From the sequence record OR493421.1: a DNA stretch of 64,000 nt, one strand, 5' to 3'. The notes under the pieces were generated by a model that ran no database searches, was not told where the DNA came from, and saw only the letters and a program-made list of their open reading frames with translations. Below are positions 5,177 to 64,000 of the stretch, piece after piece. A program made the position numbers and the translations under genes. Each line of letters starts with the position of its first letter. Within the stretch, counting starts at the first letter, position 1.

Positions 5177-6291
5177 TATACACCACCGTTAAAGAGTTTA
5201 AGCAAATCTTGCAGACTGTTAGAAGAGGTATCTTTAGCAGCCTTCACTTTGATTTCTGAACGCGTGTACACTTCCGGCATATCCTGCCCATGAGTGTAGA
5301 ACGTAAATATGCCGCGGCCTTCGTTAACCACCACAATGGTGTTGGCAACAGTTTTGCTGAAAATACGGTCGCGGGAAGAGGCGTTGGAGAAACGTAAACC
5401 GATTTCGAGTTCGATCTGACGAGCGGTATCAGAAGACATAACGAAAACGTTGGCCATGGTGTTCATGGAAGCTTCGCCAGTGCGAATAGCTTCGGCACGG
5501 TTACGAGTGGCTCGTTTTTGGGCTTCTTCGTAGTACCCGGTCAAATCGTTCTTACGAACGGCGAATTCTTTCTTAACCAGATCGCTACCGGTAAGGAACT
5601 CGGCAGGTGTGATTTCGCCTGTTTTGAGCATCATGATACGCATGCGCAGGCCGTCTTCGGGCTTGGCTACCTGGAATACGTTCTCAAGCTGTTTGGTATC
5701 CGCAGGAACCGGGACCTGGCGGAATACCAGTGGGAACGTGTTGCGTTTACCATCGATGATAACTTCGGCGCCAACGACTTTACCCAGAGCGAGCGGGGAA
5801 TATTCGTTGAGGGTATTTTGAAGTTTAGTGTCGATCATCACACCGTCTTTATCTTTAACGGTAACCAGATCGGCTTCGGTCCCAGCCACCGGTGGAAGAA
5901 TGTTGGTTCCACCAAAAGACTCAGCGCCCATCAGCGAAAGGAAACCAGAACGGGATGGGTTAATGCCTTCGATCAGTTTAGCGATCTTAACTCCGCCAAC
6001 TTCACCCTGCAAACTCAGGTGGGTCAGGACGTTCATGATGTCGCGTAATTGTATGATCGTTAAAAGTTCATTCATATATTCTTGGTGGAGGAGCGGTCGC
6101 TCCACCACAACCATCGGGTTGATAATGGCGCGTTGCGCTGACTTAGCCGCGGAACTCGTGCTAACGATTCCGGCCACACTACCCAATTTATCAATGACCT
6201 TTTTGCTCTCATCGTAGTTTTTGTTGTCAGGATTAAGCATCTTAGCTAGGCTGATAATAGCGGATGCCCAGGACAGCACAGCGGTGATCAT
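5176..6291 (-). CDS. virion head/inner-body protein (phiKZ gp89-like by position)
   Basis: ORF track 5176-6384; AGAGGA RBS supports start at 6291 (MITAVLSW); MGAES and VAGTEA motifs. Confidence 0.55.
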   Translation of the reverse strand: MITAVLSWASAIISLAKMLNPDNKNYDESKKVIDKLGSVAGIVSTSSAAKSAQRAIINPMVVVERPLLHQEYMNELLTIIQLRDIMNVLTHLSLQGEVGGVKIAKLIEGINPSRSGFLSLMGAESFGGTNILPPVAGTEADLVTVKDKDGVMIDTKLQNTLNEYSPLALGKVVGAEVIIDGKRNTFPLVFRQVPVPADTKQLENVFQVAKPEDGLRMRIMMLKTGEITPAEFLTGSDLVKKEFAVRKNDLTGYYEEAQKRATRNRAEAIRTGEASMNTMANVFVMSSDTARQIELEIGLRFSNASSRDRIFSKTVANTIVVVNEGRGIFTFYTHGQDMPEVYTRSEIKVKAAKDTSSNSLQDLLKLFNGGV

Positions 6292-6319
6292 AGTCGTTCC
6301 TCTTTTTTGGAAATAAATA

Positions 6320-7354
6320 ATGGATATTAAATTCAATAGTTCCGAGAACTTCACTGGAGAAGCCCTAACGGACAGGTTGAGCATCTTTGATGATGTGTTT
6401 ACAGCAAATGGAGGTTCCTCCTATACATCACCCCTCGCAAATACTTTAAAGGGAATCCGTATTCTGGGACCAGGCGTACAGATGACGCCTATTGCAGACA
6501 ACGTCATAGGATTATTTTTCGTCACGCGGCCTGTTTTAAATCTCGAAGACGATAACGTTGTAAAATCTCCTCGATTCGCCCCTTTCTATAAAGCACAAAC
6601 TGATAGCCTTCCTGCTTATGTCAGGGGGTTATTGGATTATCGCTCAGCTAACCTTTATCCGCATCCGGATCTCGACAATAAATTGGCCTGGATAGCGCCG
6701 CTGACTAACTTGTGTAAAGCCAGTAACGGGTTCCCCGATTTAGATTTAGAAGTCAGGAAAAGCAATCCAGGAATTCGTAACGAGGTCCATCAGGCCCCCG
6801 TTGGTATTTTGGATGAGAACGGACCACTGACGATCAATACGACGTTCTATAATCCAAAACCAGGTATTATTCCCTATATCTTCCAAACTTGGGAAAGCTA
6901 TATTCCCGAAGTGAGATTAGGCGATAATGAGATGGAGCCTTCTCTTGAGGCGCTGGCTGGTAACTACTGGGATTTCGACTGTCGCATCTATCATTTCATT
7001 ATGAACAAAAACTTAAGAAATATAGAAAGCATGTACATGACAGTTCAATCCATCCCCGTAACCTACCCCATGGGTGCTATGTCGGCGATTGATAACGAGA
7101 GTACTGTCAGACGCGGTCAAGGGCAAGATGAACTGACAATTCAGTTCAGTAGTGTTGGGGCGAGGTTTGACACGTTTGAGGTAGTGGACGGATTTAATGG
7201 CGCTACCGTATTCTTTAATCCTAACATGGGTGATGATCAGCGTTCCTCTTACTATCGTCAAATACAACCCAGTGAATTCTTAGAAAAACAATACAACGTT
7301 TATCCTTGGATAAACCTAAGTACCATGGAATTAGAATGGTGGACTGCTAAATGA
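6320..7354 (+). CDS. virion protein, possibly baseplate/tube-initiator type
   Basis: 344-aa ORF overlapping start of the baseplate-like gene (ATGA); beta-rich; function is inference. Confidence 0.5.
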   Translation: MDIKFNSSENFTGEALTDRLSIFDDVFTANGGSSYTSPLANTLKGIRILGPGVQMTPIADNVIGLFFVTRPVLNLEDDNVVKSPRFAPFYKAQTDSLPAYVRGLLDYRSANLYPHPDLDNKLAWIAPLTNLCKASNGFPDLDLEVRKSNPGIRNEVHQAPVGILDENGPLTINTTFYNPKPGIIPYIFQTWESYIPEVRLGDNEMEPSLEALAGNYWDFDCRIYHFIMNKNLRNIESMYMTVQSIPVTYPMGAMSAIDNESTVRRGQGQDELTIQFSSVGARFDTFEVVDGFNGATVFFNPNMGDDQRSSYYRQIQPSEFLEKQYNVYPWINLSTMELEWWTAK

Positions 7355-10266
7355 GTTATTCCTACTCCGACTTAGAAAAAATATCGAATAACCCCACTCG
7401 AGTTATTCCTAACGTACTCTCCATGATCGAAGATGCATGGTCAGGTAAAAACATTGCCTTTAATAGCCCCACGCATCCATTTATCACGGCTATGGATATG
7501 ATCGTGGGTGAGGCGTATACACTGCTGAGTCGTCATAGTGACGCAGCTGCTCAGATGTATAAAAACCAGGCGAGGAACATGTCCGACCTCAGCCGTAATC
7601 TATCTGACGAAGAATGGTACGGTTTGCTCGGTGTTCCTAGCAGTACAACGATGGCTTATCTTATTCCAGTGAGTGAGATAAAACGTTTGGCCGTTGACTA
7701 CCAGGAAGAAGATGGCGCGGTAGTAAACAAATATCGCAAACTGTTAGTTCCTAAAGATACTCGAATCCTGGTTAACTCTACTTACTTCAGTATTGAAAAC
7801 GGTTTCGAAATTCGTTTAATGGAACACGGCGGTCATAGCGTTGTTTATGATTCAACTGTCAACAATCCGCTCAATCCAATTTCAGAGAACGTACTGGATA
7901 CCGACTACGTTGTTATCAGCAACGTTAAGTTCCTCCGTATCCTCGTTCCTGTTCGTCAATTGAACAACACGCCTAAGTTCAATATCGCGACAACGGCAGC
8001 CTCCGGCTTGGCTAAAGACACCTTTTATTTCAGTAACTATCTTTACGCCATCCGTGCCTTTATCACTTATTCAGACGGCAGTACTGCCGAGATGGCTATT
8101 AGCTACAACAAAGCCAACTTCGATACGACTGTACCGACTTTGGTTATCTCCCTGGATAATGATAACGGTTCGTTTACCTATGAAGTTCCGGTTGCGTATA
8201 TAACGAGCGGGTTGGGTGTAGGTAAGATCGCGTTGTACGTTTATACAACCGTCGGTTATTACGAGCAGGATCTCAAAACGATCAGTGTTGCAGATCACAC
8301 ACCGGAATATCTCGACTATAATTACGACAACAACCAATTGGGCGTGTACTCCTCGCCATTGTTGAGTGCGAATAACCAAGCCTGGATTACTGTCAACGCT
8401 GTAACCGGCGGAGCCAATCCTCGTAGTTTTGAAAGTGTTCGTCGAGCGAGCATCTACGGCAACCGCCGGGATAGTTTACCGATTACCCCTAATCAATATT
8501 CTTACAATATTGAAGACCGTGGTTACGACGAAGTACTTTCCATTGATTACATCACCAATCGCTTGTACAAGGCATCCAGAGATCTTCCCGCTCAGTCTAA
8601 TAAAGACGGGATGGTTTCTAGCATGAACACCTACATCGGATCGATTCTGCAAAGTGCCGAAGATCTGGTAGCGACAGGAATGGTGTTTGACAATGGCGAG
8701 CGGATCACTATACCGAGCAAGACGGTATTTGATATTTCGAAAACAACCACCAGGATAGTTCCATTAACAGAACTAACCGCCATCCAGAATTCTGGGTTTG
8801 AAGCTATTTCCAACTATGTCAATGGGAATGCGTTGGTTTACACTCCGTTCCATTACGTCATGGATCTTACCGACAATCAAGCGTCGTTAAGAATGTACCG
8901 GATGGATTCTCCTACCGGCAACTACCAGAGATTCTTATACGAGAACGCCAACCTGGGGATAGAGCTCGGTGTATCGAGCATCAACATCTCCGTAACGAAA
9001 ACAGGTTACGTGTTTACCCTTGTTTGTAAGTCGGGTAAAGAGTACAAGGCCCTTGAAGACAGTGAAGTCGGAGCGCAACTCTGTTTCACTCCCGCTAACG
9101 CGGCGGCGCTTGCATCTGTTAAAGGTGAGTTGGTAGGAACCAACAGTTCCGGTGAAAGGATTTGGCAGTTTGTATTATCGAGCAACTTTGATATCGATAA
9201 TAACGATTTGCTTTATCTCAACAACCTGACTCAGTACGACGCGGACGCAAATAATATCCCAAGTAGTCTGACTAACGCATTCAGTTTCCTTCTGTTAAAA
9301 ACTACTGATGATGCAACGAACAGATCAGATAGCGACAACAAAATCGCCTCTAGTCTTTTCTCTGCTGATATGCAAGCGATTATCGAAACGCAGTGGAACA
9401 TTACTCTGGGGCAGAGCCTCGATTACATGTACACTCGTATCCGACCGATCACTGGCGACGCACGTTATCAGAAGTACACTTATAACGTTCCGGATACTTA
9501 TGATAAAGATTATCCTCAGCGTGATGCCGAAGGGAAACTGGTTTTAGGTGATGATGGTCTTCCGATCTTCTTGCATAAGAAAGGCGACCCTATTCTGGAT
9601 GCTCAAGGTAATCCGACGTACAAATATCTCATCGGCGATTTTGTTAAAGACGCCGACGGTAACAACGTGGAAGTTGAACCTAGGAAGCTGCAGTATAACT
9701 TCGACTTCTTAGGGTTTGATGGTTCTTACTTCTTCACGACTGATACCTACGATAAGGATTTCGATGAGTCAACCAAAACCTATCTGACTGATAACATCAA
9801 GCAAGATATGACGGCGATTAACAATCGAAGCCTGGACGAAACCAAAGTTAAGTTTCTTCCCAAAGCTAAGATCGGCAATATCGACGTTATCATCAACGCT
9901 GATATTGAAACGACGATCAGAAGTGATCTCAGTTTCTCCATTACAGTTTACTTAACTAAAAATGGGTATGAGTCAGATGCGCTGCAAACCAGTCTCGCTA
10001 ATGCATATCCTGAGACCATCAACGATATGCTGGCTAACTCAACCATTTCTAACTCCAGCCTTATCTCCGCACTTAAAGATATTTCTGGCGACGACGTGGT
10101 TGATATAAAACTGGAGTCGTTTGCAGGTTCTACCAGCATTGACGTTATTAGTAACAAAGATGCAACGACCGGGTTCAGTATTCGTAAAGTGTTGAACAAC
10201 AACAATAACACGTTGTTGACAATTGCTGAAGATATTACTTTAAACTTTAAATTGCATAAATCCTAA
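7351..10266 (+). CDS. baseplate wedge protein, T4 gp6/Baseplate-J-like
   Basis: 971 aa; 'AVTGGANPRSFESVRRA' resembles the GGxDxES..R motif of Baseplate J/gp6 proteins. Confidence 0.6.
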   Translation: MSYSYSDLEKISNNPTRVIPNVLSMIEDAWSGKNIAFNSPTHPFITAMDMIVGEAYTLLSRHSDAAAQMYKNQARNMSDLSRNLSDEEWYGLLGVPSSTTMAYLIPVSEIKRLAVDYQEEDGAVVNKYRKLLVPKDTRILVNSTYFSIENGFEIRLMEHGGHSVVYDSTVNNPLNPISENVLDTDYVVISNVKFLRILVPVRQLNNTPKFNIATTAASGLAKDTFYFSNYLYAIRAFITYSDGSTAEMAISYNKANFDTTVPTLVISLDNDNGSFTYEVPVAYITSGLGVGKIALYVYTTVGYYEQDLKTISVADHTPEYLDYNYDNNQLGVYSSPLLSANNQAWITVNAVTGGANPRSFESVRRASIYGNRRDSLPITPNQYSYNIEDRGYDEVLSIDYITNRLYKASRDLPAQSNKDGMVSSMNTYIGSILQSAEDLVATGMVFDNGERITIPSKTVFDISKTTTRIVPLTELTAIQNSGFEAISNYVNGNALVYTPFHYVMDLTDNQASLRMYRMDSPTGNYQRFLYENANLGIELGVSSINISVTKTGYVFTLVCKSGKEYKALEDSEVGAQLCFTPANAAALASVKGELVGTNSSGERIWQFVLSSNFDIDNNDLLYLNNLTQYDADANNIPSSLTNAFSFLLLKTTDDATNRSDSDNKIASSLFSADMQAIIETQWNITLGQSLDYMYTRIRPITGDARYQKYTYNVPDTYDKDYPQRDAEGKLVLGDDGLPIFLHKKGDPILDAQGNPTYKYLIGDFVKDADGNNVEVEPRKLQYNFDFLGFDGSYFFTTDTYDKDFDESTKTYLTDNIKQDMTAINNRSLDETKVKFLPKAKIGNIDVIINADIETTIRSDLSFSITVYLTKNGYESDALQTSLANAYPETINDMLANSTISNSSLISALKDISGDDVVDIKLESFAGSTSIDVISNKDATTGFSIRKVLNNNNNTLLTIAEDITLNFKLHKS

Positions 10267-41760: not shown

Positions 41761-43773
41761 TTAGTAGGACGGACCAAACACCAGACCGCCACCTGCACCC
41801 AGCATCATACCGTTACCCAGAACGACGCCACCGGAGTTACCAGCAGTTGCCTGAGAGATATACTGCTGGCCAGGAGCGAAGACCTGAACGTTAGCGGCGA
41901 ACTGACCCATAGAGCCAGTAACCTGCAGAGAACCGATGGTGTTCATCGCTTTAGTGAACGCATCCATGAACAGCGGATCCCAGTAGCAACGACGAGCGAA
42001 GCCGAACAGGTTTACACCTTCAGAGAAGATGGTGGACAGCTGGATCAACAGATTGTAGCGACGCAGTTTTTCCGGAACGTTCGGGTTAGACCCGTACATG
42101 TTTTCCAGGTACTGGTTCATCGGGGTGATCTGATCTTTGTAGTGCTTGGACAGGAACATCTCGTCCACTTCGCCGAGCGCAATGCGTTTGTTATCCAGTA
42201 CAGCAGTACCGACAGGGATCAGCGCGTTAGAAACGTGCAGCACCGGTTTGCCCGGAACCCATCCGCCGTTGGCATTGTTGTTGGCCTGGTTTTCCGCGAT
42301 AACCGCAGACATGGCTTTCGCATCACCGGAGATGGAGTCGACGATAGCAATAACGGTTTTCACGCATTTGCTATAGTCTTTCGCACCGGAGGTGAGGTTG
42401 AACAGGAAGTTGGAGATTGCCGCATCCGGGCCGAACTGGATCAGGTCAGCAGCAAAGACTGCTTTAGGTCCAATATTGGCGCGAATCCAGTTAGTGGTGA
42501 AATCGATATCCGACAGTTTAGCGTCGGTCATCTCAGTACCCTTAGTGCGCGGAGGTAATCCATTTTCCATCTGACGGATGCGGTGTTCCATATCAGTCAG
42601 GGAGCCACGAGAACCTACGTTCTTAGAACGCAGAGCTTCAGCAAACAGGTAGTTGCTGTTGGTCGCCATCAGAGAGAACAGACCCATGAAGTAGGTCGAC
42701 AGGCCAGTCGCATCGCCCAGCACTTCGCCAGCTTTAGCGTGGTTCATAATAACCACCGGCTGCAGCGGGGTGTAGCCCTGAGGACGACCGTTAGGGGTCT
42801 GCAGGTACGGCTGCGGAATGTTACCGGTCAGCTGCGGGTTGAACTGCTGGATCGGAGAACCCATCAGGCTAACGGTCGCGTAGGTGTTGACGATTTCACG
42901 GGACTGCTCAGCATTACCCTGATAACCGTTGTGGTTAGCAGTTTGCATGCGGATGGTCAGGTTCGCCGGAGACAGCAGGCCTTCGTTAACATACTGACCG
43001 CGGATCGGTTCAACGCGAGCAATCGCATTACCGTGCTGACCATAGGCTTTGCCACCGGTCGCAGAGAACGGAGAAGGCAGAGAAGCTTTCGGCTGGTTGG
43101 CTGCGATTTTCGCGATCTGTACCATCAGACCCTGTTCCCAGCTACGCATGATTTCATCACGCAGCAGCGGCGATTTGCCCTGATTCAGGACATCGTCACC
43201 AACGATCTGTTCCAGGTCGATAACCATCACGTTGATGATCACGCATTCGCTCACACCTTTATCCTGGAGCATCGCTTTGTAGTGCATTTTGATCTGTTCG
43301 AACAGATCAGCACGAGCGTAGGAATCCGGGGTAAACGGCATGGACATTTTGCGCTGTTGGTTAACGCCGTTGTCGATCTGGATCTCTTCCAGGGTATTGG
43401 TCAGATGACGGTTAGAGAACAGCACCGGCATGACGTATACCGCAGGGTTGTTGTTCATGTGCAGGGAGAGCACGATGCCCGGCAGTGCAGAGATGATCGG
43501 TTTGGTGATGATGTTCACTTCCGGCAGGATCTTCTTCTGGGTTTCGCCCGGCGTACCGTTTTTCAGATCGGTTACGCGTTTCTTGATCAGAGCCGCGGTT
43601 TCTTCTACTTCCGGCACGTTCTTGGAAGAACCCAGAAGAGAAGCCTGGCCGAGCAGACCGAGCAGCTGAGAACCGAAATTCTCGGCAGAAGCAGAGACGA
43701 TCGGCTCTCCTTTACCAGCAGCAGTGTTCAGGACGGTTTGTTCCCAGTTGTTGCCATTTTGATTGTCGGACAT
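41761..43773 (-). CDS. chmA: chimallin, phage nuclear shell protein (phiKZ gp54-like)
   Basis: 670 aa, most biased codon usage in the window, own promoter and terminator, directly upstream of the nvRNAP catalytic beta' gene; extended N- and C-terminal tails. Confidence 0.8.
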   Translation of the reverse strand: MSDNQNGNNWEQTVLNTAAGKGEPIVSASAENFGSQLLGLLGQASLLGSSKNVPEVEETAALIKKRVTDLKNGTPGETQKKILPEVNIITKPIISALPGIVLSLHMNNNPAVYVMPVLFSNRHLTNTLEEIQIDNGVNQQRKMSMPFTPDSYARADLFEQIKMHYKAMLQDKGVSECVIINVMVIDLEQIVGDDVLNQGKSPLLRDEIMRSWEQGLMVQIAKIAANQPKASLPSPFSATGGKAYGQHGNAIARVEPIRGQYVNEGLLSPANLTIRMQTANHNGYQGNAEQSREIVNTYATVSLMGSPIQQFNPQLTGNIPQPYLQTPNGRPQGYTPLQPVVIMNHAKAGEVLGDATGLSTYFMGLFSLMATNSNYLFAEALRSKNVGSRGSLTDMEHRIRQMENGLPPRTKGTEMTDAKLSDIDFTTNWIRANIGPKAVFAADLIQFGPDAAISNFLFNLTSGAKDYSKCVKTVIAIVDSISGDAKAMSAVIAENQANNNANGGWVPGKPVLHVSNALIPVGTAVLDNKRIALGEVDEMFLSKHYKDQITPMNQYLENMYGSNPNVPEKLRRYNLLIQLSTIFSEGVNLFGFARRCYWDPLFMDAFTKAMNTIGSLQVTGSMGQFAANVQVFAPGQQYISQATAGNSGGVVLGNGMMLGAGGGLVFGPSY

Positions 43774-51089: not shown

Positions 51090-52052
51090 TTAGTAGGACA
51101 TTCCGGAATCATCACCGCCGTTTCCAACCTGCTGGGCAGATTTAAAACGTTCGTTATTTTGGATCTCGATATCTTTAAGATCCTGAACCAGAACCAGGAT
51201 ATCTTTGATCGTCGCATCATGATCAAAGACCATGTGGAGATGTTCTATTCCAGCCGGGAAGTTAGTGCTGCCTTCCTGAATAACGCCGGTCGAACGGTAT
51301 GCCAGATTTTTAATATGGCTGCCGATGTCGTCCGCTTTACGATACAAACCAAATTCAGCAACCAGCCCTGGAGTAACGTTGTCCAGCTGAGTATCGGTCA
51401 AGAAGTCGATACGAGCAAGAGTAGGCGCCGCCTTGGTAACCTGGTTGTAATAGAACAGGTTCCGGATGTCTTGGAAATCGCTTTCTTCATGTTCGTCAGT
51501 TAAGAACAGGCTCAGGATATCAAGACGGCCGATGGCATATTTGTCGGCCAATCCGCGGCTGGGATATTTGGCGTTGTCCACGTAGTCGATGATAACCGGC
51601 ACGTTCAGATTGATGCGCTGGTTGTCCAGGCTTTCAAACGTTTTAACCGTGTTGTAGTTTTCCAGTTCAGAAGTCAGGTCACCTACGACCAACGCAATGA
51701 CCGGAACACCTTGAGAGAGGAGACGGTTGATCAGAGTCGGGCCGAATGTACTCCCGGTAGCGCCTGCCGCGTTCATGATGATCAGGTTGAAATCGCCCGG
51801 TTTATGTTTGGTCAAAATACTGTCAATAAACCCAGCGGCGATTTTACCGATCAGCTTACGTTCTTTACCACCGCCACGAGTTCCTTCAGGACGTTCGACC
51901 TTAAAGGCGTCGTTATGCGGTTTGTTGTTTTCACTGCTGTCCAGTCCAATGAACTGGGCTTTACGAATAAGCGTATTCGCACCGGTGGCAATCCATTTAG
52001 ACGCAATATTAATACCAGTACCGCCGCACGCGTAAACACGTAATGTACTCAT
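51090..52052 (-). CDS. phuZ: PhuZ phage tubulin
   Basis: YACGGTGINI T1 loop, RGGGKER, AAGATGS (tubulin signature variant), SDFQD T7 loop, short acidic tail; 320 aa. Confidence 0.9.
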   Translation of the reverse strand: MSTLRVYACGGTGINIASKWIATGANTLIRKAQFIGLDSSENNKPHNDAFKVERPEGTRGGGKERKLIGKIAAGFIDSILTKHKPGDFNLIIMNAAGATGSTFGPTLINRLLSQGVPVIALVVGDLTSELENYNTVKTFESLDNQRINLNVPVIIDYVDNAKYPSRGLADKYAIGRLDILSLFLTDEHEESDFQDIRNLFYYNQVTKAAPTLARIDFLTDTQLDNVTPGLVAEFGLYRKADDIGSHIKNLAYRSTGVIQEGSTNFPAGIEHLHMVFDHDATIKDILVLVQDLKDIEIQNNERFKSAQQVGNGGDDSGMSY

Positions 52053-52118
52053 TGATCTAGCTCCTAAAAGAAATTATGATAGTTGGAATGGAAAGCATTA
52101 TCTTTTGCTTTACATTAC

Positions 52119-52138
52119 CATAATTTAGAACTGAAAAA
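52119..52138 (-). promoter_or_regulatory. phage promoter motif upstream of phuZ
   Basis: TTTTTCAGTTCTAAATTATG, 19/20 identical to 23404-23423. Confidence 0.65.
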
Positions 52139-52184
52139 ATCTAGTTCTGACATAATTAAACAACTGCCGATTTAAAAAACGCGA

Positions 52185-52215
52185 AAAAAGTCCAGTAGGG
52201 CCGAACCCTACTGGA
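52185..52215 (-). terminator. intrinsic terminator ending the ribozyme/ncRNA transcript
   Basis: minus TCCAGTAGGG-TTCGG-CCCTACTGGA then CTTTTTT. Confidence 0.85.
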
Positions 52216-52383
52216 AGGAATAAAAATTCATGGTAGAACTTTAATGATGATGTGGCGATATTCATGAGATGATGTGATGGATCACCACACGAATTGGGTT
52301 GGGGTACTTAAAGGCACGACTCTTCTTTCCCCCTAAGTCGTAACTACTTCCGGCCCTAAGGTAGGTTGAGCGCGTAGCTCGAC

Positions 52384-52572
52384 TTATTCTTTCAGCTTAA
52401 AGTTCGTAATGCTAAACGAGTTAACGTTAGTAGCTTTATGAACCTCAGTGCGCAAAACGTCAAAGATGCGATTAGCGTTAGTGAGCAAACAGTCGGAAGT
52501 AATTTCTCCGCTGTAAGTCGTAAACACAGAATTAGGTATTCGGTATCGCACGGTATACTGGTATGTGTACAT
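52384..52572 (-). CDS. 62-aa hypothetical protein embedded in structured RNA region
   Basis: AGGAGG RBS with normal spacing, clean ORF. Confidence 0.7.
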   Translation of the reverse strand: MYTYQYTVRYRIPNSVFTTYSGEITSDCLLTNANRIFDVLRTEVHKATNVNSFSITNFKLKE

Positions 52573-52589
52573 AACGAACCTCCTAAGAA

Positions 52590-53242
52590 TTTACCCCATT
52601 ATCTCCGACTCCTCACGAAGAGAGAGATAACAGGTTATACTCTTGGGGAAGTTAACACTCAACTCAAACAGAGAGGTTATAACAAAAGCAATGGTAAAAG
52701 GCAAACGAAACGCCGTGGCAGAGGTTTCCTACTCGCCCCTTGGTGAGCGACAAAGGACGAATAGGCAATCATACTGCCGTAAGATTGCGAGGTGTGACCG
52801 TCTGAGATTTTGGAGTTCCTACGAAGCTGAGCAAGCTTCCCTTCGGACTCGGAGAACGTCGGGGGTTGGCCTAACCCTCAGAGATATCTCTACAATAACT
52901 CACGTTACCCGAATACGAAAGGCTGATTACTCCGGCCGGTTTCTTACCCGTAGCTAACCCGGTTTATCGCGGAAACCCCGCATACCGGTATAATTCGCTA
53001 ATACGACTTGCAGCCCTATCTTGGGCAGCGTCGTTTGGGTTGGGAAGAAACCCGCCTGAACCAACTTTCCGGCAAGCGACCAGACACGCTTCTTTCTCTC
53101 CCACTTTCGGTTGCTTATTGTCCGCTCGTAGAGTGCGGCACTCCTAATCATGAAAGAACTTTTTAGTGCGGGCAGGCGAAGAAGCTGAAGACCTCGGGGA
53201 CCATTGCCCCTAACTGCCCGTTCAACGCTTAGGTTGAATTAT
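52590..53242 (-). ncRNA. candidate large structured ncRNA downstream of hammerhead cleavage site
   Basis: More than ten hairpins, several needing G-U pairs that work only on the minus strand, a GUGA GNRA loop and long-range helices; no credible ORF. Confidence 0.65.
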
Positions 53243-53310
53243 GACCTAATAAAATAGATTCATTAGGTTTCGTCTTGTTTAGCGTCGAAGACTCATCAGA
53301 TAACACGACG
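53238..53310 (-). ncRNA. type I hammerhead ribozyme
   Basis: minus: GUUAU-CUGAUGA-GUCUU(cgacgcuaaac)AAGAC-GAA-ACCUAAUGAA(ucuau)UUUAUUAGGU-C/AUAAU; all core nucleotides present, GUC cleavage triplet. Confidence 0.92.
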
Positions 53311-53561
53311 TGAAGAAAAACGTTAATCTATCCCATTGAACAAAAACTTGTCTGTCACAGGAGAATGGCCGTCGCTACATGGCTAAGGACAATGGGTCTA
53401 ATAAGATTAACGAATAATGGGGATTGAACCCCCTGAAAATCTCTAGCTACTTTGGCTATCTCGCTCGTGGTAAGGAGGTTCAAAGAGATGAGGTTGGGTC
53501 GCTAGTTAATCAACAGGGAGTCCAAAGATCTTTACTAATAACATCACTCTGTCGTTAGGAA

Positions 53562-54356
53562 TTACTCAGGGTCGATGAAATTCACCTCAAGGGTTTGATA
53601 ATCCCCAATGGGGTTACTCAATAAAATCTGTTCGCCAGTAAAATACATTTCTGGCCACCCGATGTAATCCAGCAGAGCGAAAACCAGTTTTAAATCAAGT
53701 GGGATATTCGTATTGTCTTCGCCGACAACCGTCATGTGTCCAATAAGATTACCCGTCACGCTTTTGTCGTAATCCCGTATGGCTTTACGCCAACCACTGA
53801 CGACGTTAGACGACAGCAGGCTAAAGGGGTTACTTGCGCTACGGTCTCCTGGGAGGATTCGAATATCGTTATTGTCTACCCGAGCACTGAACCGACGGTC
53901 TAATAAAATATTATTCAGCAGTTCGTTAGCGTAACCGATCCCATTAGCGTCGAGGTCGATTAAGCGGTAGATACTCGGTTTAATTAAATCCTGGTGAGTG
54001 ACGAAAACCTGAGTCCCTCGGCTAATCGCGTGCTTCCAGCCTAACTCCACCAACAACTCGTGGACCTTACGAATCATGTCTGGGTTTTCCATCACGTTGC
54101 GAACGGTCAGTCGGGTTCCTTCAGACATTTCCAGGACTAATAAAATCTTTTTAGTCGCTATAAGATATCCGGGATCTCGAGGGGTTGCATTCAACGCATC
54201 AGGTAATTCTTGTAACAGGGATTCGTAACGATCAACACTTGCTGAGTCTTGTGATTTAACGTGCTTGTTGTTTTTCCATGGGTTAGCTGGTTGCATAGGA
54301 TATCGCCTCTTAGGGATGTTTCGGGTTAACTTTCGAACGGATGGGGTATTTGCCAT
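53562..54356 (-). CDS. hypothetical protein upstream of ribozyme locus (start uncertain)
   Basis: 264-aa ORF. Confidence 0.65.
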   Translation of the reverse strand: MANTPSVRKLTRNIPKRRYPMQPANPWKNNKHVKSQDSASVDRYESLLQELPDALNATPRDPGYLIATKKILLVLEMSEGTRLTVRNVMENPDMIRKVHELLVELGWKHAISRGTQVFVTHQDLIKPSIYRLIDLDANGIGYANELLNNILLDRRFSARVDNNDIRILPGDRSASNPFSLLSSNVVSGWRKAIRDYDKSVTGNLIGHMTVVGEDNTNIPLDLKLVFALLDYIGWPEMYFTGEQILLSNPIGDYQTLEVNFIDPE

Positions 54357-54419
54357 CTGACAATTCGAGATCTCTGTCCTGCTCAGAAGATTATGCTCTC
54401 CGTAAGATATTACTTTGCG

Positions 54420-55120
54420 GTTAAATCTTCTTGTCTCGATAAATCTAACTTGCAGTAAAAATTAATTATCTTGATTAAAATATTTTTATTCAGTGAATAA
54501 TCCTTCCTGAGAACTCGATCAGAACACCCTCTAAAAATTCCTGTATCGATTTCTAAAACGTTTTTTCATCCGACTGATACGAATTCCTAGGTTGAGTATT
54601 AAATCTTCTCAAAATCATTCCGGTTAATATTTTTTACTCTGTGTGATTTTTTCTGGATAATCTCTCAGGTTAAATCTTGTATTTTTATAACCCCTTCTCT
54701 ATTACGCGTGCGCGTGCGCACACACGCGCTGGCGCGCGCCTAATGAATATAAATATATATAAATATATATTTATATATTTTTTATAAAAACAAACTAATA
54801 AAATATTTATAATAATTTATATTAATATATTTTTAATAAATTAAAAATATAAAACCAAATGAAAATATAATACTACGTATTATATTTGTTTTTTATATGC
54901 GTGCGGGCGTACGCACGCGTAATAAGGACCCCTAGGAAAAATTGGATTTTTTGAGTATTAAAATTTTAGATTTTTTTAGATTTAGATTTTTGAAAATTGG
55001 ATTTGGAAAATCAAAACACAGAAAAATAAAAAACCCAGAACCGGAATCGGTTTTAGATTATCTTTGAAAAATTAGAATATCCGCGCACGCGAAAAATATA
55101 AATATAAAATAGATTTGTAT
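54420..55120. other. putative replication origin or other cis-acting DNA element
   Basis: About 160-bp near-pure A/T core flanked by 13-bp inverted repeat TATTACGCGTGCG (54700-54712 / 54912-54924), mirrored AAATCT/AGATTT motifs; lies between divergent genes. Confidence 0.55.
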
Positions 55121-55442
55121 GTAAAAATTTACCAATGACCAAAATTCCGAAGAAAGAATTTTCGGAGCGCTTGGGATTGTATGTCGGATTGATTCTTGCT
55201 CGAGTGAGATCATGGCAACTCGCCTTCGAGGAATTTTTCCGGAGGCGAGGTTTTTTCTGTGGGGTGTTGTCTTACGGCACGGAGTATTTTATACGGGAAA
55301 TAAAACTCAAAAACGTACGGGATCGTAAACCCGTTGAGTTTTTAAATTCCCGCAGTGAAATATTATAACCGCCGAAACCCCAGAGTAAAAATTCTCAGTT
55401 GAATTTTTATCGAGACGGAAATTTCTCCAGTCCCGAAACTCA

Positions 55443-57860: not shown

Positions 57861-58352
57861 TTAACGGGTTTTCATAAATTCGATGTATTCTTGCGGACTA
57901 CCTTCGAATTTTACCACGTCGTAAGAAAGTATGAGTTTTTCAATAGTTGCGTGTTGAAGCCCCTCACTTTCTTTGACGTCGACATCACCGCGTTCGAGAA
58001 AATGGAGTTTCTCAGTTTCGTGATTATAAATTAATCCGAAGTGACAATGCCCCCTTCCATAGGCCTCCGCCCGGACATAATAAACGTGGCTTTTGTGATC
58101 TTCCGCTATACCCGAATAGTTTACCGTACATCCTGCGCTAATTATTTCTTCGGCCATCTTCACTTCCACTCTCTCTACTTTGAGCGAGAATGGTTCTAAA
58201 TATACTCCCGGTATTTCAGAGTTCGAAAGTTCACCGGGTGTTCTTCCCCATACGAGACTGAGGAGATCAAACCCTTCTTCTGTAGTTTTATCGGTATTGA
58301 AACCGGTACAAATAATTTTGCCGTAAAGAGAACCTTGACCTTTCTTATCCAT
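57861..58352 (-). CDS. hypothetical protein
   Basis: ORF track 57861-58457; GGAG RBS supports start 58352 (MDKKGQG). Confidence 0.6.
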   Translation of the reverse strand: MDKKGQGSLYGKIICTGFNTDKTTEEGFDLLSLVWGRTPGELSNSEIPGVYLEPFSLKVERVEVKMAEEIISAGCTVNYSGIAEDHKSHVYYVRAEAYGRGHCHFGLIYNHETEKLHFLERGDVDVKESEGLQHATIEKLILSYDVVKFEGSPQEYIEFMKTR

Positions 58353-62197: not shown

Positions 62198-62201
62198 AAA
62201 T

Positions 62202-64000
62202 TTACATATACGCGTAACGACTGCGTAACTTACGTGCTTCCAATACCCGACGACCTCTCTCTTCCTTGGCTTTCCTAACGATTTCATCGATGGTCAAACT
62301 CTTACGCTTATCCTGAGGGATCATGCTGCTGAGTTTGTCAATCATGTACTCTATCCTTTGAGCCACGGTATTGTCGGTGGTTTTAATGAGTCTGTCACTC
62401 AGTTCTTCAACTTTACGACGATAAAGTGCAACCATCGCTTCATTGTGCGCACTGTTGGTTTCCTCATTCTTATCGTCCCCAACACGCATTAAGCTGATTT
62501 TACTCAAACTAATGCCTGGAGGAATTCCGTATTCACTTTTATTGTTACCCAGTTTCAAGAACCAGAATCCTAACAACCAAGCGATAACTAGGTCATCGTG
62601 TTTATTAGCTTCGTGGTCTATTCTTCCCCCTTTCTCTTTGAGGTTAACCAGTTCGTCGATGAGTTTAGTATAGTAAATTTTATCTCCGGTAGTCCCTACC
62701 GCTTCTTGGATAAAACTATATACTTCGTCACGCGTTTTGGCGTTGGTAACGAACCCAAACAGATGTTTGAATCTCAGATAGAAGTGACTGTCTCTGTTAG
62801 CGAAATTACGTTGTTTGAACTCGATCATTTCTTTTTCGTACTTAACCGGATCTTGTATGATCTGATTAAAGATACGTTTAAAGGGATCGATCCCCAATGC
62901 AGGAAGACTAACGAGCAGTTGGTCGATCATGTGATGCGCGAAGTTACGCTCGATGATCAGTAAGCTGTTCTTAATCTCTAACAGGATCGTTTGTAGTACC
63001 TCACCAACGTCCATTAAGTAGGCTATCGGATAACGACCCACCCCAACGACTTTACCATCCATGACATCCCTTATCACTACTGTACAGGCATCTCGGTTTT
63101 GCGCAGCAGAGGTATCGCATCCAACGACGTAAAAGGTTTGACTATTCCCAGTAATGATTTGAGTATGTTCTTCCGGCGTAATAAACCAGTCGATAAACAA
63201 ACCCGTGCTCCCTACTTCCTGACTCCAGAGTATTCCTCGTTTACCCTCGTTTAACGCTTCTCGGGTTAAGTCGTCAAAAAGTTTACCTTTACTGGCGTCG
63301 TCCCACATTAACAGTAAGTCAATCTTCGCTTCGGCTAAACTTAACTTTAACTCGTCTATGGTTTTCTTAACCCAGTCTTTATTCCTACCCAACTGCAAGT
63401 AGTTGAAAACCATGCCTACGGTAGGACTGGTGATTCCCTCCACAGGACTCGCTTTAATCAAACGCTGGTAGAGATGACTCTCGTTAAAACTGTCGAAGAA
63501 CGTTTCTCGCCACTCGGTCGCATCCATCAACATGTTGTACATGTATTCGCCGCTTGCCGTCGTTTTACTCGCAGGTGTGGTAATGAATCCCGTCCCATAG
63601 GGTTCGCCTATTCTTCTGGCGTTAGCACGAGCCGTTAGCGTACTAGGGCCTGCACCGTTAAGTATCTCTTCCATGAAGTTGATATATGCCGGTTCGTCGA
63701 TCATACGCGTTTTGATAGTCAAACCACGACCAACGTTACGAGCGGCTTCTCTACCGATTTGCGGTACACTAATACGGAAGATGTTCTTCTTATCATCCCC
63801 AAACGCACTATAGGTTAACGAGTTACCGCTATCCTTATCTCGCCACCCCACGTTGGTTAAGTAACTCGGGATGTTGTTACGGATACCCTTTAACGCCTCT
63901 ACGAACTGACTACGGTTATCGTCTTTCAGGGTGATTAAGTGGGATTCGTAAGACTGCCCGGTTAAGTAAGTTAACCAGAACATAATGCTCTGGGCAGAAA
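62202..64000 (-). CDS. terL: terminase large subunit, 5'-truncated by window edge
   Basis: Walker B MIDEP, FITTPAS coupling motif, VGCDTS and HDDLVIAW nuclease motifs; frame open to the edge (SAQSI before MFW). Confidence 0.92.
   Translation of the reverse strand, partial: SAQSIMFWLTYLTGQSYESHLITLKDDNRSQFVEALKGIRNNIPSYLTNVGWRDKDSGNSLTYSAFGDDKKNIFRISVPQIGREAARNVGRGLTIKTRMIDEPAYINFMEEILNGAGPSTLTARANARRIGEPYGTGFITTPASKTTASGEYMYNMLMDATEWRETFFDSFNESHLYQRLIKASPVEGITSPTVGMVFNYLQLGRNKDWVKKTIDELKLSLAEAKIDLLLMWDDASKGKLFDDLTREALNEGKRGILWSQEVGSTGLFIDWFITPEEHTQIITGNSQTFYVVGCDTSAAQNRDACTVVIRDVMDGKVVGVGRYPIAYLMDVGEVLQTILLEIKNSLLIIERNFAHHMIDQLLVSLPALGIDPFKRIFNQIIQDPVKYEKEMIEFKQRNFANRDSHFYLRFKHLFGFVTNAKTRDEVYSFIQEAVGTTGDKIYYTKLIDELVNLKEKGGRIDHEANKHDDLVIAWLLGFWFLKLGNNKSEYGIPPGISLSKISLMRVGDDKNEETNSAHNEAMVALYRRKVEELSDRLIKTTDNTVAQRIEYMIDKLSSMIPQDKRKSLTIDEIVRKAKEERGRRVLEARKLRSRYAYM

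Follow-up and report, generated by a model that had tools for sequence, protein, structure and literature searches.

Does the gene-poor gap upstream of the phage tubulin gene of Klebsiella phage YC1 encode an RNA that cuts itself, and what would such a cut achieve? Here, we analyze 64,000 nucleotides (nt) of this Miami-like phage, which carries both PhuZ and chimallin (OR493421.1, 62001 to 126000; referred to as the window, whose numbering is used below), and describe a candidate hammerhead ribozyme on the minus strand at positions 53310 to 53238. The minus-strand order is gp267 (named after the Miami gene), a spacer of about 250 nt, the ribozyme, about 670 nt poor in open reading frames (ORFs), a Shine-Dalgarno (SD) site with a 62-amino-acid (62-aa) gene, a terminator, and PhuZ. 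Sequence and comparative evidence indicates that this is very probably a genuine type I hammerhead, set within a conserved and structured noncoding stretch of about 990 nt, with the removal of a 5′ leader as its most likely role.

Architecture of the ribozyme

Read on the minus strand, 53310 to 53238 is CGUCG-U-GUUAU-CUGAUGA-GUCUU-CGACGCUAAAC-AAGAC-GAA-ACCUAAUGAA-UCUAU-UUUAUUAGGU-C/AUAAU, where the slash marks the predicted scissile bond between C17 (53243) and A1.1 (53242), placed by the hammerhead consensus. Three helices (stems I, II, and III, of 5, 5, and 10 bp) extend from one junction, and the strand order is the 5′ strand of stem I, core, stem II hairpin, GAA, stem III hairpin, C17, and the 3′ strand of stem I. 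Stem I pairs GUUAU (positions 2.5 to 2.1; 53300 to 53304) with AUAAU (53238 to 53242), the sole part of the ribozyme on the downstream product. This stem is open and stems II and III are capped by loops, as in the type I topology. Stem II (GUCUU, 53292 to 53288; AAGAC, 53276 to 53272) has G53292-C53272 as its G10.1-C11.1 pair, and stem III (53268 to 53259 with 53253 to 53244; loop UCUAU) begins with A15.1-U16.1. All nucleotides that a hammerhead core calls for are present, namely C3 U4 G5 A6 U7 G8 A9 (CUGAUGA; 53293 to 53299), G12 A13 A14 (53269 to 53271), the A15.1-U16.1 pair, and an H (not G) at position 17.

The 11-nt loop II (CGACGCUAAAC; 53287 to 53277) starts with CGACG (53287 to 53283), the exact complement of CGUCG (53306 to 53310), which lies one nucleotide 5′ of stem I. 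A 5-bp Watson-Crick pseudoknot is predicted from this match, so the contact between loop II and the flank of stem I is present at the sequence level. A preliminary description of the window had proposed this ribozyme; read base for base, the minus strand agreed with all of its coordinates, and the type I topology, the perfect core, the predicted cleavage at 53243/53242, and the loop II pseudoknot can each be seen there.

Having every defining feature that can be read from sequence, the RNA is filed as a type I hammerhead with predicted activity. It resembles the pseudoknotted type I hammerheads already described (PMC3088659; Rfam clan CL00010) in its three-way junction, consensus core, G10.1-C11.1 and A15.1-U16.1 pairs, GUC triplet, and open stem I, and in a pseudoknot of 4 to 6 bp between the loop of stem II and nucleotides next to stem I. 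About 40% of representatives, drawn from all three hammerhead types, have pseudoknots of this kind, and disrupting them abolishes fast cleavage at 0.5 mM Mg2+ (PMC3088659). The YC1 site differs from these relatives in scoring below the Rfam thresholds, in being a single copy inside a long conserved noncoding RNA, and in belonging to a chimallin/PhuZ jumbo phage, for which the searched literature reports no hammerhead.

Expectation by chance

A type I descriptor (exact CUGAUGA; GAA plus A15.1; U16.1; H17 not G; stems of at least 4, 3, and 3 bp) matched once on the two strands of the window, at 53310 to 53238. Random sequence (40 Mb) generated by a first-order Markov model of the window's composition gave three matches to this loose form, corresponding to a chance expectation of about 0.01 per window, and none with stems of at least 5, 5, and 10 bp. 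The whole YC1 genome (252,505 bp; the window plus L012 to L016) was also scanned with looser type I, II, and III descriptors and with a covariance model made solely from homologues of the site (R1), and no further credible hammerhead was found. R1 has a single match in the 252-kb genome, and in an unrelated metagenome-assembled genome (MAG) it picks up independent type I hammerheads. The pseudoknot by itself has a probability of about 0.05 among random pairs of a 12-nt flank and an 11-nt loop; taken alone it would be the weaker evidence, and it gains weight from its conservation and from one compensatory change in a relative.

The loosened descriptors also gave a weak type III hammerhead-like match on the plus strand of the window (58213 to 58310; core CUGAGGA; stems of 4, 3, and 5 bp), which is most likely a chance match.

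Conservation and covariation

Divergent relatives were obtained by protein searches, giving three lineages, namely the Miami-like phages, contigs L004 and L007 (from the same sample), and contig L008. The YC1 locus is 99.5 to 100% identical to those of Miami, phiKp_32, and BUCTxx100 and about 93% identical to those of KPN8 and Raoultella phage VB_ZK_P1; L005, L006, L023, and L026 are further Miami-like variants. In the divergent lineages, the gp267 homologue of L004 is only 39% identical, and PhuZ is 74% (L007) and 49% (L008) identical. The ribozyme is retained in all Miami-like genomes and in both divergent metagenomic lineages (L004, L008). Compared with the 93% relatives, the bin 53185 to 53284, which holds most of the ribozyme, has no differences and is the only such 100-nt bin in the 6.8-kb locus; the upstream gene has 13 to 24 differences per 100 nt (about 20), and the 500 nt 3′ of the ribozyme have 2 to 3.

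Relatives with mutated cores and no covariation, which the preliminary description had named as evidence that would speak against it, were not what these sequences contain. The cores are kept, the sole core change being U7 to C in L005 at N7, the core position that accepts any base. G12 A13 A14 and stem II, including G10.1-C11.1, are invariant in the homologues, and loop II varies at positions 6 and 7 (CU, AA, or UU) with CGACG unchanged. Changes in the helices include compensatory ones in stems I and III and in the pseudoknot. In stem I, G-U becomes A-U in KPN8, and in L008, A-U becomes G-C, U-G becomes C-G, and the helix is lengthened to 7 bp. In stem III, A-U becomes G-U in L004 and L008, G-U becomes A-U in L004, and, by hand register, A-U becomes G-C in L004; L026 has a 1-nt deletion that preserves pairing. 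The pseudoknot pair G53306-C53287 becomes U-A in L008, and the sequence similarity between the window and L004 starts at GUCG of the pseudoknot strand. Counted on true homologues only (5 distinct rows, with model-fitted noise matches excluded), 97.5% of cells are paired, as against 27 to 55% when partners are slid by 1 to 3 columns, and three pairs show double changes (two in stem I, one in the pseudoknot).

Further relatives were sought in several collections. A search of IMG/VR by way of PhuZ gave no close relatives, and pattern scans of viral, metagenome, and genome collections gave one more Miami-like contig (L023), the remaining matches being unrelated hammerhead-like sites. Scans limited to the vicinity of PhuZ found no hammerhead in the 6 kb flanking it on each side in Aphrodite1, PDCC-1, and RisingSun (GenBank) or in the 10 kb on each side in 18 chimallivirus-like contigs from IMG/VR.

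On L008 (526 to 545 and 561 to 575), the pseudoknot strand CGUCUU has two complementary partners, GAGACG in loop II and AAGACG, made up of the 3′ strand of stem II and G12, so that the RNA could adopt an inactive alternative fold. The YC1 counterpart is a pairing of GUUUU (53321 to 53317) with AAGAC in the RNAalifold structure. Such alternative pairing could be a folding switch or could be meaningless.

Evidence against an active ribozyme

Several observations weigh against a genuine, active hammerhead. For the Rfam models, a check named in the preliminary description, the result was negative at the curated thresholds: no hammerhead model (RF00008, RF00163, RF02275-7, RF03152) matched at its gathering threshold, and in E-value mode, hammerhead models aligned with the site at scores far below it. 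Hammerhead_3 (RF00008) scored 23.7 bits against a threshold of 48.5 (E = 0.017), a model that cannot align the full type I topology because it represents the type III permutation. RAGATH-1-hammerhead (RF03152) gave the best full-topology alignment, spanning core, stem II, GAAA, stem III, GUC, and stem I in type I order, at 19 bits against a threshold of 56.3 and with model positions 1 to 24 unmatched; by that model, the site is not a member. Stem I is short and AU-rich, and the nested minimum free energy (MFE) fold forms the pseudoknot helix at the expense of stems I and II (−17.6 versus −10.5 kcal/mol). In L004, stem III has one A·A mismatch and the pseudoknot lacks its outermost pair, leaving 4 bp. 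The covariation comes from six distinct sequences in three lineages, and 8 of 500 column shuffles reached the observed covariation score; it is thus supportive of the ribozyme but thin. Finally, we infer minus-strand transcription of the unit from gene orientation only, because the flanking genes all point that way.

How much the Rfam scores mean can be judged from Patescibacteria MAG JAHCSE010000023.1 (L025), which was found by pattern scan and used as a yardstick for Rfam sensitivity. The gathering score is an operational criterion and not a defining property of the class, and Rfam output hides overlapping clan matches, the RF00163 score among them. About 2.7 kb of L025 (4970 to 7700) holds seven hammerheads (type II, four copies; type I, three copies), with copies of the two types interleaved across the last 1.6 kb. 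Scanned from 5900 to 7900 (E ≤ 1), Rfam reports two type II copies only, one above gathering (41.2 bits) and one just below (35.0 versus 37), and none of the three type I copies, although these have perfect cores and are all found by R1 and the type I descriptor. Rfam models are thereby shown to under-detect bacterial and phage type I hammerheads, and because perfect type I copies of L025 also go unreported, nondetection of the YC1 site says little.

An inactive relic or a chance look-alike, conserved for some other reason and not cleaving, would fit the sub-threshold Rfam scores, the weak AU-rich stem I, and the MFE fold without stems I and II, and inactive hammerhead-like RNAs have been listed by Perreault et al. 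(PMC3088659). Against this stand the low chance expectation, a core whose required nucleotides are unaltered in all three lineages (N7 alone varies), the compensatory changes in the stems and pseudoknot, and the three perfect type I copies that Rfam misses in L025 while calling type II. We consider a relic or look-alike improbable.

A conserved noncoding RNA around the ribozyme

The ribozyme lies in a gap of about 990 nt between gp267 and the 62-aa gene (52573 to 53561, minus strand) that is ORF poor and more conserved than the genes on either side. Its larger part, 52573 to 53237, is the RNA that would be released 3′ of the cut, either a structured leader or a noncoding RNA; it is GC rich and ORF poor and has 0 to 3 differences per 100 nt from the 93% relatives, compared with about 20 in the upstream gene. 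The noncoding stretch has a GC content of 0.53, compared with 0.44 for the window. Sliding-window MFE z-scores are unremarkable and carry no weight either way, being only moderately negative (−1.4 to −3.4) over most of the noncoding region, with values of about 0 to −1 in two windows (53000 to 53299). Among the Miami-like sequences, 11 of the 13 substitutions in predicted local helices preserve pairing, and one pair is changed on both sides. To judge from this conservation and pairing, the whole gap behaves like one structured noncoding RNA. This larger RNA is absent from the preliminary description. No family for the flanking RNA was found by Rfam at gathering thresholds in the window, and E-value mode on 52100 to 53700 and on L008 1 to 1000 returned noise only.

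Three islands outside the ribozyme are common to the divergent lineages (L007, L008), with covariation. Upstream, an anti-Shine-Dalgarno-like motif, UCUUUGAACCUCCUUACCAC (UCUUUGRACCUCCUUACCAC; 53467 to 53486), is kept in all three lineages and is predicted by RNAalifold to lie in a 13-nt hairpin loop. The entire 252-kb YC1 genome contains the exact sequence ACCTCCTTACCAC only once, and both L004 and L008 retain it. In YC1, the motif reads ACCUCCUUACCAC and includes ACCUCCUUA, the anti-Shine-Dalgarno sequence of the 16S rRNA 3′ end. It could pair over 9 bp with the SD region of the 62-aa gene (52590 to 52580), a pairing that is not conserved, being weakened in KPN8-type sequences, and that looks no different from generic SD complementarity. 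Just 5′ of the ribozyme is a hairpin domain (53322 to 53411) formed by 53411 to 53404 with 53329 to 53322 and by 53396 to 53390 with 53338 to 53332. The second helix covaries (RNAalifold pair 175-233, U-A to C-G in two sequences), and the apical part of the domain holds a variable patch. The other two islands lie downstream of the cut. One is the hairpin GYCUGGUCGCUYRCCGGRAAGUUG (53085 to 53062), in which a U-A pair of YC1 is exchanged for C-G when L008 is compared; the other is a block at 52858 to 52823 that is nearly identical to L007 1 to 36. In addition, the hairpin before the SD site of the 62-aa gene covaries, with UUAUCUC.../...GAGAUAA in YC1 and UUAGCCC.../...GGGCUAA in L007.

Two candidate identities for upstream elements were rejected. 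A promoter or terminator signal used repeatedly, as a reading of the upstream motif, was discarded because the motif is found only once in 252 kb. A tRNA upstream of the ribozyme, suggested by the T-arm-like GGGGGUUCAAUCCCC (53433 to 53419), was discarded because ARAGORN finds no tRNA or transfer-messenger RNA (tmRNA) in the window.

Conservation of the gap might instead reflect the plus strand, either small genes or a DNA-binding or promoter site, with the RNA fold incidental. The Miami and KPN8 annotations place short plus-strand ORFs in the gap, and the reverse complement of the upstream motif resembles a strong SD site, TAAGGAGGT. The annotated ORFs, however, do not span the ribozyme, and the gap is without an annotated gene in four of the six distinct phage records (YC1, phiKp_32, BUCTxx100, and VB_ZK_P1; seven records counting the Miami RefSeq copy). 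Gene calling on L005 and L006 placed no gene there either. L006 has a frame-breaking 1-nt insertion in the longest plus-strand ORF of the gap, and substitutions have no clear third-position bias; the ORFs of Miami and KPN8 look spurious. A plus-strand reading of the motif, as TAAGGAGGT followed by a mini-ORF, was also rejected, as L004 and L008 do not preserve the mini-ORF. Lastly, the G·U pairs of stems I and III and of the downstream hairpins would be A·C on the plus strand, which argues that selection acts on the minus-strand RNA. We regard a plus-strand or DNA-level feature as very unlikely indeed.

Proposed role of the cut

The most likely role of the ribozyme, judged from its position and from what its relatives retain, is the protein-independent removal of a 5′ leader. 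As the minus strand is transcribed, stems I to III would fold around the conserved core, and pairing of loop II CGACG with CGUCG 5′ of stem I would align stems I and II, as in other fast natural hammerheads. The RNA would then cut itself after C53243, during or soon after transcription. Because stem I is an open helix, nearly all of the ribozyme and the upstream RNA would stay on the 5′ product, which would include the primary 5′ end and the ACCUCCUUACCAC hairpin and would end in a 2′,3′-cyclic phosphate. The 3′ product would begin with 5′-OH-AUAAU, with a hairpin (UUCAAC...GUUGAA) immediately behind it, and would extend through the conserved leader (about 670 nt) and the 62-aa ORF to the terminator. 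The downstream RNA would thus gain a defined 5′-OH end, and its fate (stability, folding, translation) would no longer depend on the upstream RNA.

In both YC1 and L008, a hairpin starts at the predicted new 5′ end or overlaps it. That of L008 (ACGAC...GUCGU) shares sequence with the 3′ strand of stem I, an overlap that would favor product release. A comparable arrangement is known from engineered 5′-untranslated-region (5′-UTR) insulators of the RiboJ type, in which a hammerhead followed by a hairpin removes a variable 5′ leader and leaves a product with a few stem nucleotides, the hairpin, and a 5′-OH end. RiboJ is synthetic and derived from a satellite RNA ribozyme, whereas the YC1 arrangement is natural and would release a conserved leader of about 670 nt.

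Alternatively, the cut could serve the gene upstream, splitting a polycistronic RNA between gp267 and the downstream genes so that the gp267 mRNA gains a structured 3′ end with a cyclic phosphate and the two halves differ in stability. The ribozyme does lie 250 to 320 nt past the gp267 stop on the same strand in Miami-like genomes and L004, and hammerheads flank genes in polycistronic prophage RNAs (Perreault et al. 2011, PMC3088659). L008 is at odds with this explanation: no gp267-like ORF is present in the 525 nt that the contig covers upstream of the ribozyme, where a terminator-like hairpin at the contig start is followed by an AT-rich stretch and the conserved upstream motif, yet it keeps the motif, ribozyme, downstream island, small gene, and terminators. 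Since L008 keeps this unit without such an ORF in these 525 nt, leader removal is favored over separation from gp267. In L004, moreover, a terminator-like hairpin stands between the gp267 homologue and the upstream motif, and the downstream RNA is far more conserved than gp267, whose protein is 82% identical between YC1 and the 93% relatives. Separation from gp267 as the purpose of the cut therefore appears unlikely to us.

We also entertain, tentatively and as a possibility we do not favor, that the hammerhead is the maturation site of an undescribed large structured RNA of Miami-like nucleus-forming phages. Of the noncoding gap, which is about 1 kb long, cleavage would release a 3′ part of about 670 nt in YC1; its L008 counterpart measures about 350 nt. 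Transcripts in the phage nucleus, assumed here to be beyond the reach of host RNases, would then need their 5′ ends set independently of protein, and the RNA itself, not the 62-aa ORF, would be functional, for example in regulation of the PhuZ region, export, or counter-defence. That a protein-free cut suits a phage nucleus is speculation.

Relation to other phage hammerheads

Thousands of hammerheads are known, many of them in intergenic regions of phages and prophages (Perreault et al. 2011, PMC3088659). The preliminary description had noted that hammerheads occur in some phage and bacterial sequences, and examples with stem I/II pseudoknots in phage intergenic regions have indeed been on record since 2011 (PMC3088659). 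It named none in the PhuZ/chimallin block of a nucleus-forming phage, and the searched literature contains no link between hammerheads and nucleus-forming phages. The phage and prophage ribozymes of PaP3, Bcep176, and the Agrobacterium triple arrangement around ardA (PMC3088659) resemble that of YC1 in being cis-cleaving (as predicted for YC1), in lying between codirectional genes of tailed phages, and in their presumed role in processing long transcripts. In the arrangements highlighted there, several ribozymes flank a gene or short gene block; YC1 has one in 252 kb, and it precedes about 670 nt of conserved ORF-poor RNA rather than a gene directly.

The YC1 hammerhead is a further example of a well-known ribozyme class and not a new kind of element; a hammerhead is ordinary for a phage, and to ribozyme biology as such it adds an example and no principle. 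If active, it would be the first hammerhead found reported for chimallin/PhuZ (nucleus-forming) jumbo phages in the searched literature, and it would fix to the nucleotide the 5′ end of a long RNA, strongly conserved and unannotated, beside the phage tubulin gene. Single point mutations would then offer a handle on RNA processing where a compartment separates transcription from translation, and on the role of the noncoding RNA. Most worth pursuing is the conserved unannotated RNA of about 1 kb that the ribozyme would cut, next to PhuZ of a nucleus-forming phage.

Neighboring genes and other features of the window

The preliminary description had placed the site in the PhuZ/chimallin block of a nucleus-forming phage, and the gene content bears this out, with PhuZ at 51090 to 52052 (phrog_4733) and chimallin at 41761 to 43773, both on the minus strand. 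The orphan gene 5′ of the ribozyme (Miami gp267; 53562 to 54356, minus strand) encodes a protein of 244 to 264 aa for which family and fold searches gave no matches. The first ORF on the released RNA is the 62-aa gene (Miami gp270; 52384 to 52572, minus strand), which has a good SD site and homologues on L007 and L008. Its protein has a confident predicted fold (predicted local distance difference test [pLDDT] score, 92.5; beta-beta-alpha-beta), and its best structural neighbors are archaeal/eukaryotic ribosomal proteins LX/eL20 (template modeling [TM] score, 0.6 to 0.7; E = 0.025 to 0.5), a weak resemblance that gives a weak hint of an RNA-binding fold. A strong intrinsic terminator (52191 to 52215, minus strand) ends the unit before PhuZ, and equivalent terminators lie 3′ of the L008 homologue of the 62-aa gene.

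Beyond gp267, a very AT-rich intergenic region (54400 to 55400; GC content, 0.20 to 0.33) separates divergent genes, and within it both strands of 54600 to 54999 have strongly negative fold z-scores (−4 to −5.7). The region presumably holds promoters and hairpins for the two divergent units. At the end of the window (about 62200 to 64000; YC1 record, 124202 to 127600), the terminase large subunit is annotated as intein containing, and the matching 1,132-aa product on L005 and L006 has weak LAGLIDADG_3 matches.

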